This document shows positions 7,792 through 60,696 of a stretch of 64,000 bases of DNA, in pieces (position 1 is the stretch's first letter; each line of letters begins with the position of its first letter). Below the pieces are notes generated by a model. The model had not been told where the DNA came from. It saw only the letters and a list, made by a program, of their open reading frames with translations, and ran no database searches. The stretch is from sequence record LC819007.1. One strand, written 5' to 3'. The translations under genes were made by a program, and so were the position numbers.

Positions 7792-7842
7792 CAGCATAAA
7801 GGACCCCGTACCGGCTTGTGGCTGGTACGGGGTTTTATGTTG
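7792..7842. terminator. bidirectional hairpin terminator with CATAAA/TTTATG arms
   Basis: ccccgtaccgg-cttgt-ggctggtacgggg between convergent genes. Confidence 0.7.
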
Positions 7843-37615: not shown

Positions 37616-38740
37616 TTACTTCTTGAAGGCAGCTACAGTGGCTGCAATCGTAGACAAGACTACAGGCACACACTTAATGACTTCTAAAGTATTTTTACGC
37701 CGCACACTCAAGATATCTCCGGCTTGTTTCTCCAGATACAGCTCGTGCTCCTTGAGCAACTTCTCACGCTCACGTTGCAGCTTCTCCAGTTCCTGGCTAT
37801 GTTTCGTGAGCCGCAACTCGGCATCGCGATCCATGTTTTCCCGTTCCTGCTGCGCTTTGAGCAGTTGGTTCTCTGCTGTGCGCGCTTTGGTTTCCAGTTC
37901 CTGGATCTGGATACTCCCCCGATTCTGCAGAGCTTCCTGCTGAGTCGCATACAACTTGTAAGGGAGTTTTTTGTCACCGAAGACATACCGATCCGACAAC
38001 AGCTTCTGCGGACCTTGCCCGTTGAGCAGGTTCTTGGAGTACGTGACGTAGATCCCATCCGCCACATCCGGGTCCTGACACGCCACAATACAGAACGGCG
38101 TATCATCAATCAGAATCCACTTCGAGCCAAACTCCTCATTGTTATCCACAATGCGAATGTTCAGCGTGAAATCCCCTTTCCTCAAGTGCGGGTTGCCTTC
38201 CGCGACCTTCTGGAAAGAATTGAACGTGTGACCCGCTTTCGAATACGGATGATGGATACGTCCCATATCCGCTTCCGAAAATCCATACATCACAACGAGG
38301 TCGTGTTCTTCCAGATACACGACACCGTCGTTCTCAAGCAGTTCCACTAGCCTGAGCTTGCTCAGCACGTCGACTGAATAACGAGAGGACATCGGTGGTT
38401 CCGAGCCCCAGCTAGTCAGCATCGCCTGATGCGCGTACTCTCTCATCGACGTCGCTGTACTTCTAGCCTGACGGATGTAGTCCTGCTGGGTTTCTGGTGT
38501 GCATTCGATGTGCTCGCCAATAAAGAAGAAGTCTGGTTCGTACGCACTCGATTCAAGTCTCGGTCTGACGCGCGTAAGCAGGCCAGATCGCTCTCGAATG
38601 AATACGTCACCCGGTAGACGGTTGACGAAGAACTTCGTACGATCCGTCTCTACTTGCCTACGCCTCTCAACTCTCTGGTCATGCGTGAGAGTCTCGACGT
38701 GATCGAGGTATATGCGCTTCATGTTGTCCGTGCTGTTCAT
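37616..38740 (-). CDS. hypothetical protein with C-terminal coiled coil and TM anchor (gp122-like position)
   Basis: 374 aa; lies under the promoter motif at 38838. Confidence 0.6.
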   Translation of the reverse strand: MNSTDNMKRIYLDHVETLTHDQRVERRRQVETDRTKFFVNRLPGDVFIRERSGLLTRVRPRLESSAYEPDFFFIGEHIECTPETQQDYIRQARSTATSMREYAHQAMLTSWGSEPPMSSRYSVDVLSKLRLVELLENDGVVYLEEHDLVVMYGFSEADMGRIHHPYSKAGHTFNSFQKVAEGNPHLRKGDFTLNIRIVDNNEEFGSKWILIDDTPFCIVACQDPDVADGIYVTYSKNLLNGQGPQKLLSDRYVFGDKKLPYKLYATQQEALQNRGSIQIQELETKARTAENQLLKAQQERENMDRDAELRLTKHSQELEKLQREREKLLKEHELYLEKQAGDILSVRRKNTLEVIKCVPVVLSTIAATVAAFKK

Positions 38741-45821: not shown

Positions 45822-45866
45822 GTTGTTTTGAAATCTCTCTAAAGATTAGGGGGTGGTACTGCAGGA

Positions 45867-45878
45867 TGATGATATGTG
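45867..45878 (-). promoter_or_regulatory. putative early promoter CACATATCATCA
   Basis: Motif copy directly after the HNH stop codon. Confidence 0.5.
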
Positions 45879-45879
45879 G

Positions 45880-46503
45880 TCAAATCTTTCTCGGCTTTGC
45901 ACCGATAGCTTCTTCAAAAGACCAACCGTTGCTGATTCTCCAGCTAACTGTGCGATAATTAATGTTTAGCTCGCGACACCACACCGGTAACGTTTGCTTG
46001 CGACCGTTGCGCTCGTAGAAGATGTTATTTGATCTATTGTTGGCTTGTTCCGTCTTGGTTGCCCAGCGACAGTTATTTTTCGAATAGCCGAGATCATTTT
46101 CTTCTCGATCGAGCGTGTGGTCTGGAGACGGCCGTCGCCCCATGTCACGATAGAAGTTTTCGAACTCACGCCACTCATCGCAAACTGTAATACCGCGCCC
46201 ACCATACCGATCATAGTGGGTGGCTTTGGGATTGTAGCAGCGCTCGATCATCTGACGCCAAACGTTAAACTCGGCCAGATGACGATTGCCGTGTACTGTG
46301 ACTGCTTCTCGCTGAAGACAGCCACAACTCCGAGTGGGATTTTTCTTCGCTCTCAGGTTATTCATGTACACGCGAGCTTCATTTCCACAATCACAAACAC
46401 AAATCCAGATCGGGCTGAAATATCCGTTCCTTACGAATAGTCTTTCTTTAACGACAAGACGTCCGTAGCGCTCTCCGGTAAGATCAAGAGGTGTTACTGG
46501 CAT
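45880..46503 (-). mobile_element. free-standing HNH homing endonuclease
   Basis: DLTGERYGRL, WICVCDCG, SCGC, YGGRGITVCDEW, TLDREENDLGYSKNNCRWATKTEQANN; lower GC than neighbours. Confidence 0.8.
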
Positions 46504-46551
46504 TTCTGTAGCACAAAGAGTGGCGTATAGGCGCCGTTAAGAGAAAAGATA

Positions 46552-46590
46552 GCATAGAGAGGAGGGTATCCCCTCCCTCTTTTATGCCGC
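46552..46590. terminator. hairpin terminator
   Basis: gcatagagaggaggg-tat-cccctccctctt-ttatgccgc. Confidence 0.7.
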
Positions 46591-46591
46591 T

Positions 46592-49863: not shown

Positions 49864-50778
49864 TCAGTCCTTCGGATACACTTCTTTGTTGAACGCAAGG
49901 AACGTATTCAACTGTGCGCGAGCGACTTCCACCGCGCCCGACCAGATCACCTGATAAGCGCGATCCAGATGTTCCCACGCCTTGAGACCGCGCACGCGGT
50001 GCTGATCCTGCGAGTCCCAGGAGTAATTCATCGTCATGTGCACCGACGTCTTGTAGATGCCGTAGATCGTATCGGCCATGGCGTCCGGCTTGTTGACCAG
50101 ATGATGCACGATCACCTGCGCCGGATCGATATCCGGCAGCGAACGGAACAATTCGCTGTGCTTCTCGAAGTCACCCAGGAAACGGGTCACAGCCGAGCGT
50201 ACCTGGTCTCCCTGGACGATCGTGAACAGGCGTGCGACTTCACTGATAATCGACGGGATGCGCACTTGGATATACGCGTCCTGGTCGCCGACCCAGAGCG
50301 CGAAACGCAGATACACGTCCCAGTTCAGCTCCGTGTTCAGACGCTTCACCACGATCGCGCTTTCGAAGTGCACGCCGGTTTCGTTCTCGGCTCGCTTCTG
50401 CCGCACGAAGTCTTCCATGATGATCAGCAGTTCCTCGACCGGCCGTGGATCTTTCACCAGTCGATTCGGCAACTGCAGGCCGTGGGGCGCCAGTTGCTTC
50501 TGGATGTAGTTCTCCACCCGATGGAGCGTATGCAGGAAGTTATCCCGCTCATACATCGCGTTGTAGATCACCGTGCCCGGTTCTTCGGACAGATTCAAGG
50601 TAATCCAGCGATCGTGATTCAGACCGCTGTTGAGTGCTGCCGTGCGCAAGCCCTTCGCTGCGCTGTAATGTTTCTGCGTCGACGGCGCGCTGAAGAGGGA
50701 TTGCACTTTGACCGAATAGCCAAAGCCCAATGCTTGTTCCAGGAAATCCTGGAGGGAGAGAGTCGTCACGGCTTCCAT
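49864..50778 (-). CDS. hypothetical protein
   Basis: About 304 aa from MEAVTT with RBS aagga. Confidence 0.65.
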   Translation of the reverse strand: MEAVTTLSLQDFLEQALGFGYSVKVQSLFSAPSTQKHYSAAKGLRTAALNSGLNHDRWITLNLSEEPGTVIYNAMYERDNFLHTLHRVENYIQKQLAPHGLQLPNRLVKDPRPVEELLIIMEDFVRQKRAENETGVHFESAIVVKRLNTELNWDVYLRFALWVGDQDAYIQVRIPSIISEVARLFTIVQGDQVRSAVTRFLGDFEKHSELFRSLPDIDPAQVIVHHLVNKPDAMADTIYGIYKTSVHMTMNYSWDSQDQHRVRGLKAWEHLDRAYQVIWSGAVEVARAQLNTFLAFNKEVYPKD

Positions 50779-50865
50779 GTCATCCTTCTGATTATTCGGG
50801 GTGGCTTTTCTAATAACACTCAATCTGAATGTGAGTAGAAAAACGAAAAAAATAAATAGCACATT

Positions 50866-51441
50866 GCCCACCCTCTAACCACTCGGTCTTACTCTAGCCG
50901 CTTCGCGAAGTAGCTAGTGTCAAGTGAGTGCGTTGGGGTGGGCGTATGCCTTTCTTTGAGTGACGCGGATCTCTCAGCAAATCTCCTAGTGGCATTCCAT
51001 CGGTTCCAGATTGATGGCGCGGGCTAGGTCTCAGTGCTTATTGAGTTCTCTGTCAAAGACACCACACAGGCGTCTGTTTCTCGATTCTGGTAGCGTGTAC
51101 TTACCAGGCTTGAGGGCTCGTCAGTTCCCTCAATATGACGCCAGTTGTCCGACGTACGCAAGTATGTCTGCAATCGGAGAGCCAGCGTGAGCGACGGCAT
51201 GTAAGAACCAGGTAAGTGAAGATCAGCTACTTTTCACTGTAGGTGTTAGCCCTGTTCCTAGCGACTCGCGTCGTTAAGGAACCCATTTTACGCAGGTGCT
51301 CATGCTGCGCGGAATGTAGGCGATGCAAACGAGCATCAGACCACGGGTTGAACGTTAGGTCCAATACCCGTGTGAAAAGAGGAGATCTCCAGAAACCCCA
51401 GCTCAAGTACCGCAAGAAGCTAGCGTAACCGTAGATTTTTT
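50866..51441 (+). ncRNA. candidate large structured non-coding RNA (family unknown)
   Basis: About 570 nt without a credible ORF, at least nine helices, most G-U wobbles and a GCAA tetraloop favour the + strand. Confidence 0.5.
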
Positions 51442-51498
51442 GTTCTCCTTATTTGGTTCTATAAAAATGGAACGAGCTGTAATTTCTTACAGCTTACC

Positions 51499-51747
51499 TT
51501 ATTCCGGCTTCTGATTCCGGATGCACTCGTCCCGAGCATGCTCGAAACGTTCAGTGCGCCACTGGTTCAGAAGCAGGTCCACGTTAGTCGTGGACGGCGC
51601 AACCACGGGAGGCGGCGAAGGCGGGACAGCCTCTACCACCTCCCAGACAACCGGCGCCGGCTTGAGACGCTGCTCACGCGACTGGCGAGCTTGCAGCGAT
51701 TCAGAGGTCGTTGTAATACGAGACACTGGCGAGAGGCTTATGGTCAT
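51499..51747 (-). CDS. hypothetical protein
   Basis: 82 aa, followed by hairpin agctgtaa/ttacagct. Confidence 0.5.
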   Translation of the reverse strand: MTISLSPVSRITTTSESLQARQSREQRLKPAPVVWEVVEAVPPSPPPVVAPSTTNVDLLLNQWRTERFEHARDECIRNQKPE

Positions 51748-52087
51748 AGCTGAAAATCTCCAGGGTATAACGCATACGAGTTTCGCTCTTTTCGCGAGTA
51801 ATCTTCGCGGTCGGGTGCGTAGCCGACGTGCTCTTGAATGCAGCCTTGAACGACTGAACTGCTTCGATGTAGCGGTTCAGCTTTGCTTCATCCAGCATGG
51901 TCATGTTGCTGTAACGCAGAGCACGTTGCACGCGGCGCAGTTCGTTTTCGAGTGCGTCGTGATGCACGGCCGTGTTCGTGAAGAAGTCAACGTTCTGCAC
52001 TTCAAACGTTTCGACCTTCGGTGCAACCTTGACCGGTGCGTCTTCGATACCGAGCAGGGCTTTGAGTTCGTTGGTGATGGACAGCAT
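51701..52087 (-). CDS. hypothetical protein
   Basis: 128 aa; RBS aaggag. Confidence 0.65.
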   Translation of the reverse strand: MLSITNELKALLGIEDAPVKVAPKVETFEVQNVDFFTNTAVHHDALENELRRVQRALRYSNMTMLDEAKLNRYIEAVQSFKAAFKSTSATHPTAKITREKSETRMRYTLEIFSYDHKPLASVSYYNDL

Positions 52088-60409: not shown

Positions 60410-60496
60410 GTCTCCTAAATTGGGGGTGTGATAAATAACCCTCGGAGTAAGAAGTTGACAGCATAAAAGCCGGTTTCCCGGCTCCGATGCTTTATC

Positions 60497-60566
60497 TGCG
60501 TAGGATGGGAATCGAACCCACTCTTTCGGGTCGTAACCGACGTTATGCCAATCTACTACCTAACGC
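60497..60566 (-). tRNA. tRNA-Arg(ACG), atypical, no encoded CCA
   Basis: Acceptor GCGU(U)AGG/CCUACGC, anticodon arm UCGG-UUACGAC-CCGA, T-arm GUGGG-UUCGAUU-CCCAU; followed by terminator 60459-60490. Confidence 0.65.
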
Positions 60567-60696
60567 AGCCCAACGGACGTTACCGGCATTTCCAACCCCG
60601 AGCTGATACTGAGACCCTAGGTTAAGAAAGTAACTAGCAGCGGAATTACTGCTACAAAATGCAATAACCGTGTATTAAAACAAAAAAATAAAGAAT

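Follow-up and report, generated by a model that had tools for sequence, protein, structure and literature searches.

Does the long interval without annotated genes between gp101 and gp102 of the Ralstonia jumbo phage FLC4-3B hold a structured RNA and, if so, which strand is it made from and what kind of RNA is it? The interval lies in a window of 64,000 nucleotides (nt) of record LC819007.1 (291 kb), in which each position equals the position in the record minus 62000. The annotation is empty from 50779 to 51700, flanked by gp101 (49864-50778, minus strand) and gp102 (51701-52087, minus strand), and the gap region is 100% identical to FLC4-3B and 99.2% identical to its relative FLC1-1B (together, FLC). 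A preliminary description had proposed a non-coding RNA of about 570 nt at this location, transcribed opposite to its neighbours. We find that the element is a conserved folded RNA. By analogy, we lean towards reading the gap as a minus-strand dual-function-RNA unit of the RNAIII type, composed of a small open reading frame (ORF), a folded 3' RNA and a rod-like terminator hairpin.

There are only four lineages that carry the element, and these are FLC4-3B with FLC1-1B, RP12 with RP31, the IMG/VR contig UViG312 and the Logan contig SRR20750537. RP12 and RP31 have a corresponding gap, flanked by homologues of gp101 and gp102 with 33% and 47% protein identity, and its alignment with the FLC gap reveals perfectly kept blocks of up to 25 nt between diverged stretches that still pair. 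A scan for exact blocks led to the IMG/VR contig, which is 283 kb long, and a protein-cluster search with gp101 returned SRR20750537 and micro-variants of the IMG/VR lineage; this fourth lineage was reached solely by the protein-cluster route. A blastn search of phage genomes (E <= 10) yielded no matches beyond the RP12-like clade. Metagenome and genome collections scanned for exact blocks contained either no match or chance matches, and three viral matches to one block were also due to chance. Loci retrieved via the neighbouring protein contained no further copies of the element, and the neighbouring proteins have no informative family and no homologues beyond the clade in the phage-record collection searched. 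Thus, the family is known from four lineages, all of them RP12-like Ralstonia jumbo phages.

Compensatory changes demonstrate a conserved folded RNA

The element is a conserved structured RNA with compensatory changes, and its folding is real. The RNAalifold consensus of a six-sequence alignment (A6, in minus-strand orientation) comprises 179 base pairs, and 93.3% of the cells in this consensus are standard pairs. Both sides are altered in 45 of the 179 pairs. The number falls to 4-7 in slid controls and averages 16.3 +/- 2.8 in column shuffles, of which not one in 500 reaches 45. The best-supported of the helices in which these changes fall are collected in Table 1.

All nine of the helices listed in the preliminary description are present in the sequence, and six of them stand when the lineages are compared. 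The first, the 78-nt rod, changes from GCCCACCC/GGGUGGGC to GCCCCAGC/GCUGGGGC in RP12. Compensatory change is also seen across the four lineages in the fourth (GAGGG/CCCUC at 51112-51131) and in the hairpin GUUCCU...AGGAAC (the seventh), and the stem CGCAG/CUGCG (the eighth) exchanges an A-U for a G-C pair. The outer stem of the fifth, which surrounds a near-invariant tip, has four different sequences in four lineages, and the position of the ninth (CACGGG/CCCGUG) is kept with a wholly different sequence between lineages. The second helix was partly right, in that its TCTTTGA/TCAAAGA pairing is lost in RP12 but the adjacent UGAC/GUCA (51052-51055 with 50961-50964) is a conserved closing helix. 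The third and sixth had been drawn as local hairpins, and their bases belong instead to a covarying long-range helix (51211-51217 with 51099-51105). A pseudoknot suggested for the loop of the eighth helix could form in FLC and UViG312 only, and not in SRR20750537 or RP12.

Folding energy, by itself, is weak evidence. The z-scores of the FLC sequence are -2.9 to -3.0 on the plus strand and -4.7 to -5.1 on the minus strand. Among 28 control windows of 596 nt from the same genome, the mean is -1.4 (standard deviation 1.7) and the minimum is -4.7, and therefore stability alone does not set the gap apart from the rest of the genome. The comparison with shuffled sequence that had been put forward as a check thus gives negative values on both strands, but they are not exceptional against windows of the same genome.

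The element is an undescribed family with a narrow distribution. No Rfam 15 family is matched at gathering score anywhere in the window, and a search at E <= 10 of the gap and of two other lineages (L006 and L003) produced scattered chance matches only, so the novelty suspected earlier holds across three lineages. The covariance models of ROOL and GOLLD were unmatched in these same searches, and while GOLLD usually lies beside tRNA genes, the tRNA nearest to the element (at 60496) is 9 kb away. The absence of tmRNA, RNase P and group I or group II intron hallmarks, also part of the preliminary description, agrees with Rfam, which is negative for all of them, and with ARAGORN, which reports only a tRNA-Arg. 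In addition, the flanks are not joinable exons of an intron, since they are separate ORFs, each with a start and a stop codon of its own, and are divided by terminators. Likenesses that were noticed by eye to tmRNA, to CR-V of RNase P, to domain V of group II introns and to a T-loop were supported neither by covariance models nor by ARAGORN. The two genome papers on these phages are silent on introns and on non-coding or intergenic elements, and our literature search turned up no account of an RNA of this kind in jumbo phages.

The small open reading frame and the non-coding 3' domain

On the minus strand, the 5' third of the element is occupied by an unannotated ORF, preceded by a Shine-Dalgarno sequence whose context, AAAUAAGGAG, is the same as that of the ribosome-binding sites of neighbouring genes. 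The ORF begins with AUC and remains open for 67-70 codons in all four lineages, and its stop is always the same UAG (51227-51229). It lacks any canonical start codon, and in FLC an in-frame TAA is located five codons upstream. Codons 1-28 carry a coding signature. Between FLC and SRR20750537 there are 8.5 synonymous and 1.5 non-synonymous differences in this segment (proportions pS 0.47 and pN 0.03), and the corresponding values are pS 0.42 and pN 0.11 for FLC and UViG312, and pS 0.33 and pN 0.09 for UViG312 and SRR20750537. In the other two frames pN exceeds pS. Variable sites are distributed 4/3/12 over the three codon positions (p = 0.004), and the peptide segment LSWGFWR is retained in RP12 via the synonymous differences TTG/CTG, GGT/GGC and AGA/CGT. 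Furthermore, each indel in codons 29-70 has a length divisible by three, and the frame remains open in only 5-11% of dinucleotide shuffles.

These features make it reasonably probable that the small ORF is translated, and they are at odds with the earlier view of the element as non-coding throughout. Initiation at AUC in Escherichia coli proceeds at 1-2% of the AUG level (bioRxiv 10.1101/063800), so translation would be expected to occur at a low rate. The predicted product is basic (isoelectric point 10.9; 9.6-10.9 among the lineages) and hydrophilic (grand average of hydropathy, GRAVY, -0.64; -0.33 to -0.90 among the lineages), and it has no hydrophobic stretch. This composition does not fit membership of a type I toxin-antitoxin system.

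Much of the ORF is also RNA structure. Codons 19-69 form a closed domain that contains GNRA-capped and covarying hairpins and is sealed by a helix between 51372-51379 and 51230-51237, and the compensatory changes in codons 29-70 are often non-synonymous. Conserved structure is thus present both outside and over the ORF, as in a dual-function RNA, a correspondence that concerns structure only.

Downstream of the ORF lies a 3' domain of about 370 nt (50859-51226), which is the best conserved sequence of the neighbourhood. Its identity between FLC and UViG312 is 90.5%, compared with 73.6% for the gp101 coding sequence, 68.8% for the element's own ORF and 63.8% for an 82-amino-acid ORF upstream. 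Single-base indels beside the invariant blocks AUGCCGUC, AUG-CGUC, AUGACGUC and AUGCAGUC differ between lineages, and therefore this domain cannot be coding. A second ORF, beginning at an ATG inside CUUACAUGC, was considered and discarded because these indels place it in different frames in FLC and UViG312. In each of the lineages examined, all frames are interrupted by 5-17 stops, with all three stop codons among them, which leaves no place for a hidden long gene or for recoding. The RP31 annotation places ORF103 (L004 3298-3585, plus strand) within the element but opposite to it in strand. This is probably a spurious gene call: RP12 has an identical element sequence and no such call, and the frame is closed in the FLC lineage.

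The 3' domain is arranged as a closed junction, an unpaired strand, a long arm, two hairpin domains, a linker and the rod. Its long-range closing helix starts after nine unpaired bases past the UAG (the first paired base is 10 nt downstream). The long arm of domain D2 is built, by lineage, from UGG/CUG, CAGGC/GCCUG, CCUUGCCA/UGGCAAGG and GCGC/GCGC, and the hairpin at 51112-51131 belongs to the same domain. The linker CACUCAAnGAAAnGCAUAC that precedes the rod is invariant.

The best surviving of the other explanations is a small protein gene of the ordinary kind whose 3' untranslated region (UTR) is long and structured. The protein would then be the functional product, and the folds would do no more than stabilise the mRNA, terminate it and regulate its own translation. 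The coding signature of codons 1-28, the frame preserved through in-frame indels in four lineages and a Shine-Dalgarno context typical of this phage are all consistent with such a gene. However, the non-coding part is better conserved than both the ORF and the flanking genes, and unpaired junction strands of 20-25 nt are invariant. Moreover, two thirds of the ORF are under RNA-pairing rather than protein constraint, as when CAG changes to CGG and CUG to CCG, which is compensatory and non-synonymous. We regard this explanation as rather unlikely.

Strand and boundaries of the unit

Watson-Crick covariation is symmetric, and therefore the 36-45 compensatory pairs are compatible with either strand. 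A first strand test based on intersected RNAalifold pair sets found equal counts of G-U and A-C and was uninformative. The only set that separates the strands is a strand-neutral one, in which helices were defined without G-U pairs and the fourth lineage was included. Its non-Watson-Crick cells read as 28-33 G-U pairs on the minus strand versus 10-14 on the plus strand, and our own tally from the printed list gives 26 columns versus 13. This ratio of 2-3 to 1 runs opposite to the earlier statement that G-U wobbles favour the plus strand. The z-scores (-5.1/-4.3/-4.65 for minus versus -2.9/-1.7/-4.6 for plus) and the RNAalifold energies, which are better on minus in all four domains, also favour the minus strand. 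There, a single hairpin has the caps GCGA, GCGA and GUGA, all of the GNRA type, on a stem that changes completely, as cgac/gucg, cgca/ugcg and gcag/cugc. Finally, all four of the in-helix differences between FLC4-3B and FLC1-1B create or repair G-U pairs on the minus strand and give A-C mismatches on the plus strand. It is thus very probable that the element lies on the minus strand, in the same direction as its neighbours and not opposite to them as first described.

The initial proposal amounts to a stand-alone plus-strand RNA of about 550-580 nt, antisense to its neighbours, which would begin at the conserved TATG just past the rod (G 50948) and end with the hairpin at 51475-51494. Several features speak for it besides the strand symmetry of the covariation. 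The invariant GGGCGTATGC stands right after a hairpin, like the hairpin-plus-TTATG sites of this phage. The FLC tail TTATTCCGG past the 51475-51494 hairpin matches the terminator motif, and the near-invariant tip can fold on this strand as GACGUAC-GCAA-GUAUGUC, with a loop of the GNRA type and a G-U pair. Against it stand the G-U counts and energies given above, the Shine-Dalgarno sequence and coding-signature ORF on the minus strand, and the GNRA caps with a covarying stem on that same strand. In addition, the plus-strand terminator tail is not kept in UViG312, SRR20750537 or RP12. An A-rich stretch to the left of the rod resembled -35 and -10 boxes, but a scan for a sigma-70-like promoter found none. 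Nor would one be needed, because replication of RP12 is insensitive to rifampicin (PMC5468394), which indicates transcription by phage polymerases independent of that of the host. We consider this proposal unlikely.

The minus-strand unit appears to be bounded by signals of the phage's own transcription. The intrinsic terminator motif of phiKZ is a hairpin followed by YTTATKYYGT (PMC10914365), and its late promoter is TATG, with G as the +1 nucleotide (PMC4666361). A genome-wide motif scan finds about 30 sites in the window with a G+C-rich hairpin followed by TTATG/T (for example at 7799/7835, 24511/24549, 44076/44107 and 49827/49856), many of them two-sided (CATAA-hairpin-TTATG) at convergent gene ends. 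These sites indicate that RP12-like phages share the transcription signals of phiKZ. On the minus strand, TTAT tails follow both the rod and the hairpin at 51475-51494 in all four lineages, so that both correspond to phiKZ-type terminators by the sequence definition only. The minus-strand tails of the four lineages read UAUUUAU..., CUCUUUUAU..., CUAUUUAU... and, in canonical form after the rod of RP12, CUCUUAUGCCGC. The rod had been presented as an RNA domain in its own right. With such a tail it would be at least the terminator of the unit, and it is possibly a functional arm as well.

The hairpin at 51475-51494 is terminator-like on the minus strand by scan. Its minus-strand loop is GAAA, a GNRA loop, in three of the four lineages (GAAU in FLC1-1B), and CUGUAAGAA(A/U)UUAC is kept there in all lineages. 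The hairpin accompanies the element even in lineages with another upstream gene, as in L006 and L020, where a different ORF precedes it, and it is followed by CUUUUAUGAACCA in two lineages. A putative phage-type promoter then reads TTTTTATAG-AACCA in FLC, CTTTTATG-AACCA in UViG312 and SRR20750537, and AATTATTTG-ACCA in RP12. Extra small ORFs are present on either side of the element in two lineages (L006 1164-1472 and 2224-2388; L020 5120-5449), and the N-terminus of the one located between the rod and gp101 resembles a signal peptide. The insertion of different genes on both sides marks the element as an autonomous module that moves as a unit, including its two hairpins.

This arrangement also bears on the possibility of a cis-acting leader or attenuator, in which translation of a leader ORF and alternative 3' folds would set the read-through of the rod into gp101. 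The order of leader ORF, structured RNA, terminator and downstream gene on one strand would suit this function, as would a weak start codon, which is typical of regulatory ORFs. In RP12 (L003), the 11-nt sequence UGAGCUGGGGC occurs twice, in ORF codons 8-11 and in the 3' arm of the rod, and the ORF copy could compete for the 5' arm in an alternative pairing. However, we rejected an antiterminator in which the ORF block UGAGCUGGGG would pair with the rod, since this pairing, although perfect in RP12, is weak in FLC and disrupted in UViG312. The stop codon of the ORF is also some 280 nt away from the terminator. Moreover, the downstream gene varies, with an ORF of about 102-109 amino acids as read here (called as 109 in L020 and 132 in L021) between the rod and gp101 in two lineages. 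Lastly, the canonical terminator plus TATG after the RP12 rod implies that gp101 has its own start signal there. An attenuator is therefore doubtful, and we give it little weight.

It is highly improbable that the region is a DNA-level element or nothing specific (an origin, a packaging site, a terminator/promoter cluster or chance repeats in a decayed gene), for although its z-scores fall within the range of the genome's coding windows and two of its hairpins are terminators by sequence, there are no direct or tandem repeats that could be iterons of a replication origin and no skew change, and this explanation also has against it the excess of double-sided pairs over the 4-7 of the controls, the conservation above that of flanking genes and the stops in all frames.

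Table 1. Features of the element and its upstream neighbour, in window coordinates
Feature	Position	Strand	Description
Upstream neighbour ORF	51499-51747	minus	82 amino acids; outside the element; unannotated in FLC4-3B
Boundary hairpin	51475-51494	minus	AGCUGUAA-GAAA-UUACAGCU; candidate terminator of upstream operon; T-rich TTAT tail after it
Putative phage-type promoter	51459-51472	minus	Predicted start ~51459; alignment A6
Shine-Dalgarno sequence	51443-51450	minus	AAGGAGAA; 7-8 nt 5' of AUC; all four lineages
Small ORF	51227-51436	minus	69 codons plus UAG; unannotated; AUC start at 51434-51436
Closing helix	51372-51379 / 51230-51237		CUUUUCAC/GUGAAAAG; U-A to G-C and U-A to C-G; 2 pairs double-changed
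Domain D2	51099-51217	minus	Multi-way junction closed by 51211-51217/51099-51105 plus 51207-51209/51107-51109; helices 13, 15 and 17 with 7, 5 and 4 pairs double-changed
Long-range helix	51211-51217 / 51099-51105		ACUUACC/GGUAAGU to AUCUCAC/GUGAGAU; 7 pairs double-changed
D2 junction strand	51186-51205	minus	CUUACAUGCnGUCGCUCACG; invariant, unpaired
D2 long arm	51140-51186	minus	Near-invariant tip 51151-51175
Arm helix	51173-51186 / 51140-51153		4 sequences; 13 continuous pairs in SRR20750537; 5 pairs double-changed
Hairpin	51112-51131		4 pairs double-changed
Domain D3	50961-51075	minus	Helices 18-26; hairpin 51057-51075 with conserved loop UGUGU; nested multi-helix arm 50961-51055; helix 20 with 4 pairs double-changed
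Helix	51043-51048 / 50968-50973		4 pairs double-changed
Rod, extended	50859-50949	minus	78-nt hairpin 50866-50943 extended by GCAUA/UGUGC; helices 27-28, 5 pairs double-changed
Rod, 78-nt hairpin	50866-50943		3 pairs double-changed
U-rich tail	50835-50858	minus	UAUUUAUUUUUUUCGUUUUU with TTAT; 3' of rod; phiKZ-type terminator tail

A putative dual-function unit and its relation to known systems

The initial notion of an independently transcribed structured RNA survives insofar as the element is a conserved and autonomous module, and not as regards the plus strand or an entirely non-coding nature. In the dual-function unit that we favour, a phage RNA polymerase would make one minus-strand transcript of about 610 nt (from ~51459 to ~50850), bounded by two phiKZ-type hairpin terminators. 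A strong Shine-Dalgarno sequence and a conserved near-cognate AUC would open the ORF of 67-70 codons, of whose product only the first ~28 residues would be constrained as protein. The non-coding domain of ~370 nt would then fold into a multi-helix junction architecture, and the rod, a long hairpin, would end the transcript. Perhaps most of the function resides in the 3' domain, as an RNA that binds a protein or a second RNA. A ribosome that arrives at the UAG would unpair the beginning of the closing helix, and the distance of 9 nt between the two suggests that ribosome traffic and RNA folding may be coupled.

That the 3' domain acts in trans is a tentative proposal, which we hold at somewhat less than even chances. 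Another possibility, to which we assign a low probability, is that the 3' domain represents a new class of large functional RNA in jumbo phages related to phiKZ (a ribozyme, a decoy, an RNP scaffold or an RNA that assembles with itself) and that translation of the AUC-initiated ORF gates its folding or release. We know of no description of such an arrangement in phages.

Several observations weigh against the dual-function unit. The strand, the ends and the translation of the unit are all inferred from sequence. The consensus structure used to count the double-sided changes was tested on the alignment that had also yielded it, and this alignment represents four independent lineages by six distinct sequences. 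Codons 29-70 have no periodicity (17/16/21) and are weakly constrained (pN/pS 0.4-0.65), the peptide has no homologue or family, and its AlphaFold model is uninformative (predicted local distance difference test score, pLDDT, 60). An exact TATG is missing at the proposed minus-strand start in FLC and RP12. On the plus strand, the near-invariant tip folds as a 7-bp GNRA hairpin and the invariant sequence after the rod resembles a hairpin-plus-TATG promoter, which together make an additional antisense transcript possible. Lastly, we looked for a target, a partner or a catalytic motif and found none, so that the functional part of the proposal rests on analogy.

The surroundings of the element call for some corrections. 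It was described as occupying the largest gene-free gap, which is true by annotation (922 nt), and other large gaps prove to be missed or shortened ORFs. The gap is not itself free of ORFs, given the small ORF within the element and the 82-amino-acid ORF listed in Table 1. The FLC1-1B annotation has a match to the latter that is slightly shorter at its 5' end, and the IMG/VR lineage (L006) has a homologue of 84 amino acids. The gap really lacking an annotated gene is therefore 50779-51498. The annotated 770-nt gap at 45822-46591 is occupied by an ATG-initiated ORF of 207 amino acids (45880-46503, minus strand) without a Pfam match. Its YGGRGI..C..W motif may resemble that of phage homing-endonuclease-like proteins. 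The gp88 frame, annotated as 258 amino acids (37616-38392), is open upstream to an ATG at 38740 (37616-38740, minus strand, 374 amino acids), and with the longer frame the 627-nt gap in front of the major head protein gene would largely be explained. ARAGORN places a tRNA-Arg(ACG) at 60496-60567 (minus strand) that is missing from the feature table of the fetched record stretch, where only tRNAs for Tyr, Asn, Asp and Gln are given, all of them further on. A protein with an SspB domain (PF04386, ClpXP adaptor family) is encoded within a few kilobases of the element at L020 9658-10095 and L021 8396-8797.

Jumbo phages related to phiKZ protect their DNA and transcribe it with machinery of their own, and little is known of their non-coding RNAs. 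The unit described here is better conserved than the protein genes around it, and in it a large covarying fold is joined to a short stretch of constrained peptide and an AUC start. Should the 3' domain work at the RNA level, a new family would be added to the few large structured RNAs of phages, and the conserved AUC, if used as a start, would provide an uncommon natural example of throttled initiation among phages. The phage can be grown and mutated. For annotation, four genomes would gain a missing small ORF, an RNA element and two terminators. With four lineages, one host genus and no functional lead, we consider the element to be of moderate interest.

Phages like phiKZ produce many small RNAs from UTRs, with reported fragments of 89-196 nt (PMC10914365). 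Both bounding hairpins of the element resemble the phiKZ terminators described there in having a hairpin and a TTAT tail, but the rod, with 78-91 nt, differs from the ~25 nt that is typical (PMC10914365). The RNA between the element's two terminators is also far larger and better conserved than the UTR fragments.

ROOL and GOLLD are large folded RNAs of phages and prophages, of unknown function, and ribosome binding has been reported for GOLLD (PMC12286853). The analogy drawn with them in the preliminary description holds for size and phage origin and not for family membership. The element is likewise large, folded and phage-borne, and its 5' Shine-Dalgarno sequence can be set beside the ribosome binding of GOLLD. 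However, its core is only ~370 nt, its 5' third is an ORF, its nearest tRNA is 9 kb away and it is known from four phage lineages with one host genus.

The mRNAs of hok-type type I toxins are heavily folded, with long-range pairings and a small, poorly translated ORF. The element is similarly folded, and RNAalifold (helix 2) even pairs its Shine-Dalgarno sequence at 51443-51450 with the U-rich tail at 50835-50850, recalling the 5'-3' closure of hok. This pairing may be spurious, since both sequences are A/U-rich and the tail may lie past the transcript end. Unlike hok, the element would encode a basic, hydrophilic peptide rather than a membrane helix, and it is carried by a lytic phage.

RNAIII of Staphylococcus aureus, which contains hld, and SgrS/SgrT are RNAs of a few hundred nucleotides with a small ORF in the 5' region and a larger, conserved non-coding part made of several hairpins. 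In RNAs of this type, the terminator hairpin ends the transcript and also belongs to the fold. The element differs in that it has neither sequence or structure homology to them nor an Rfam match, is phage-borne and starts with AUC. No target-pairing loops were identified in it, and the likeness is one of layout. Within these bounds, the element has the same three predicted parts, namely a 5' small ORF, a larger conserved fold and a terminator hairpin.

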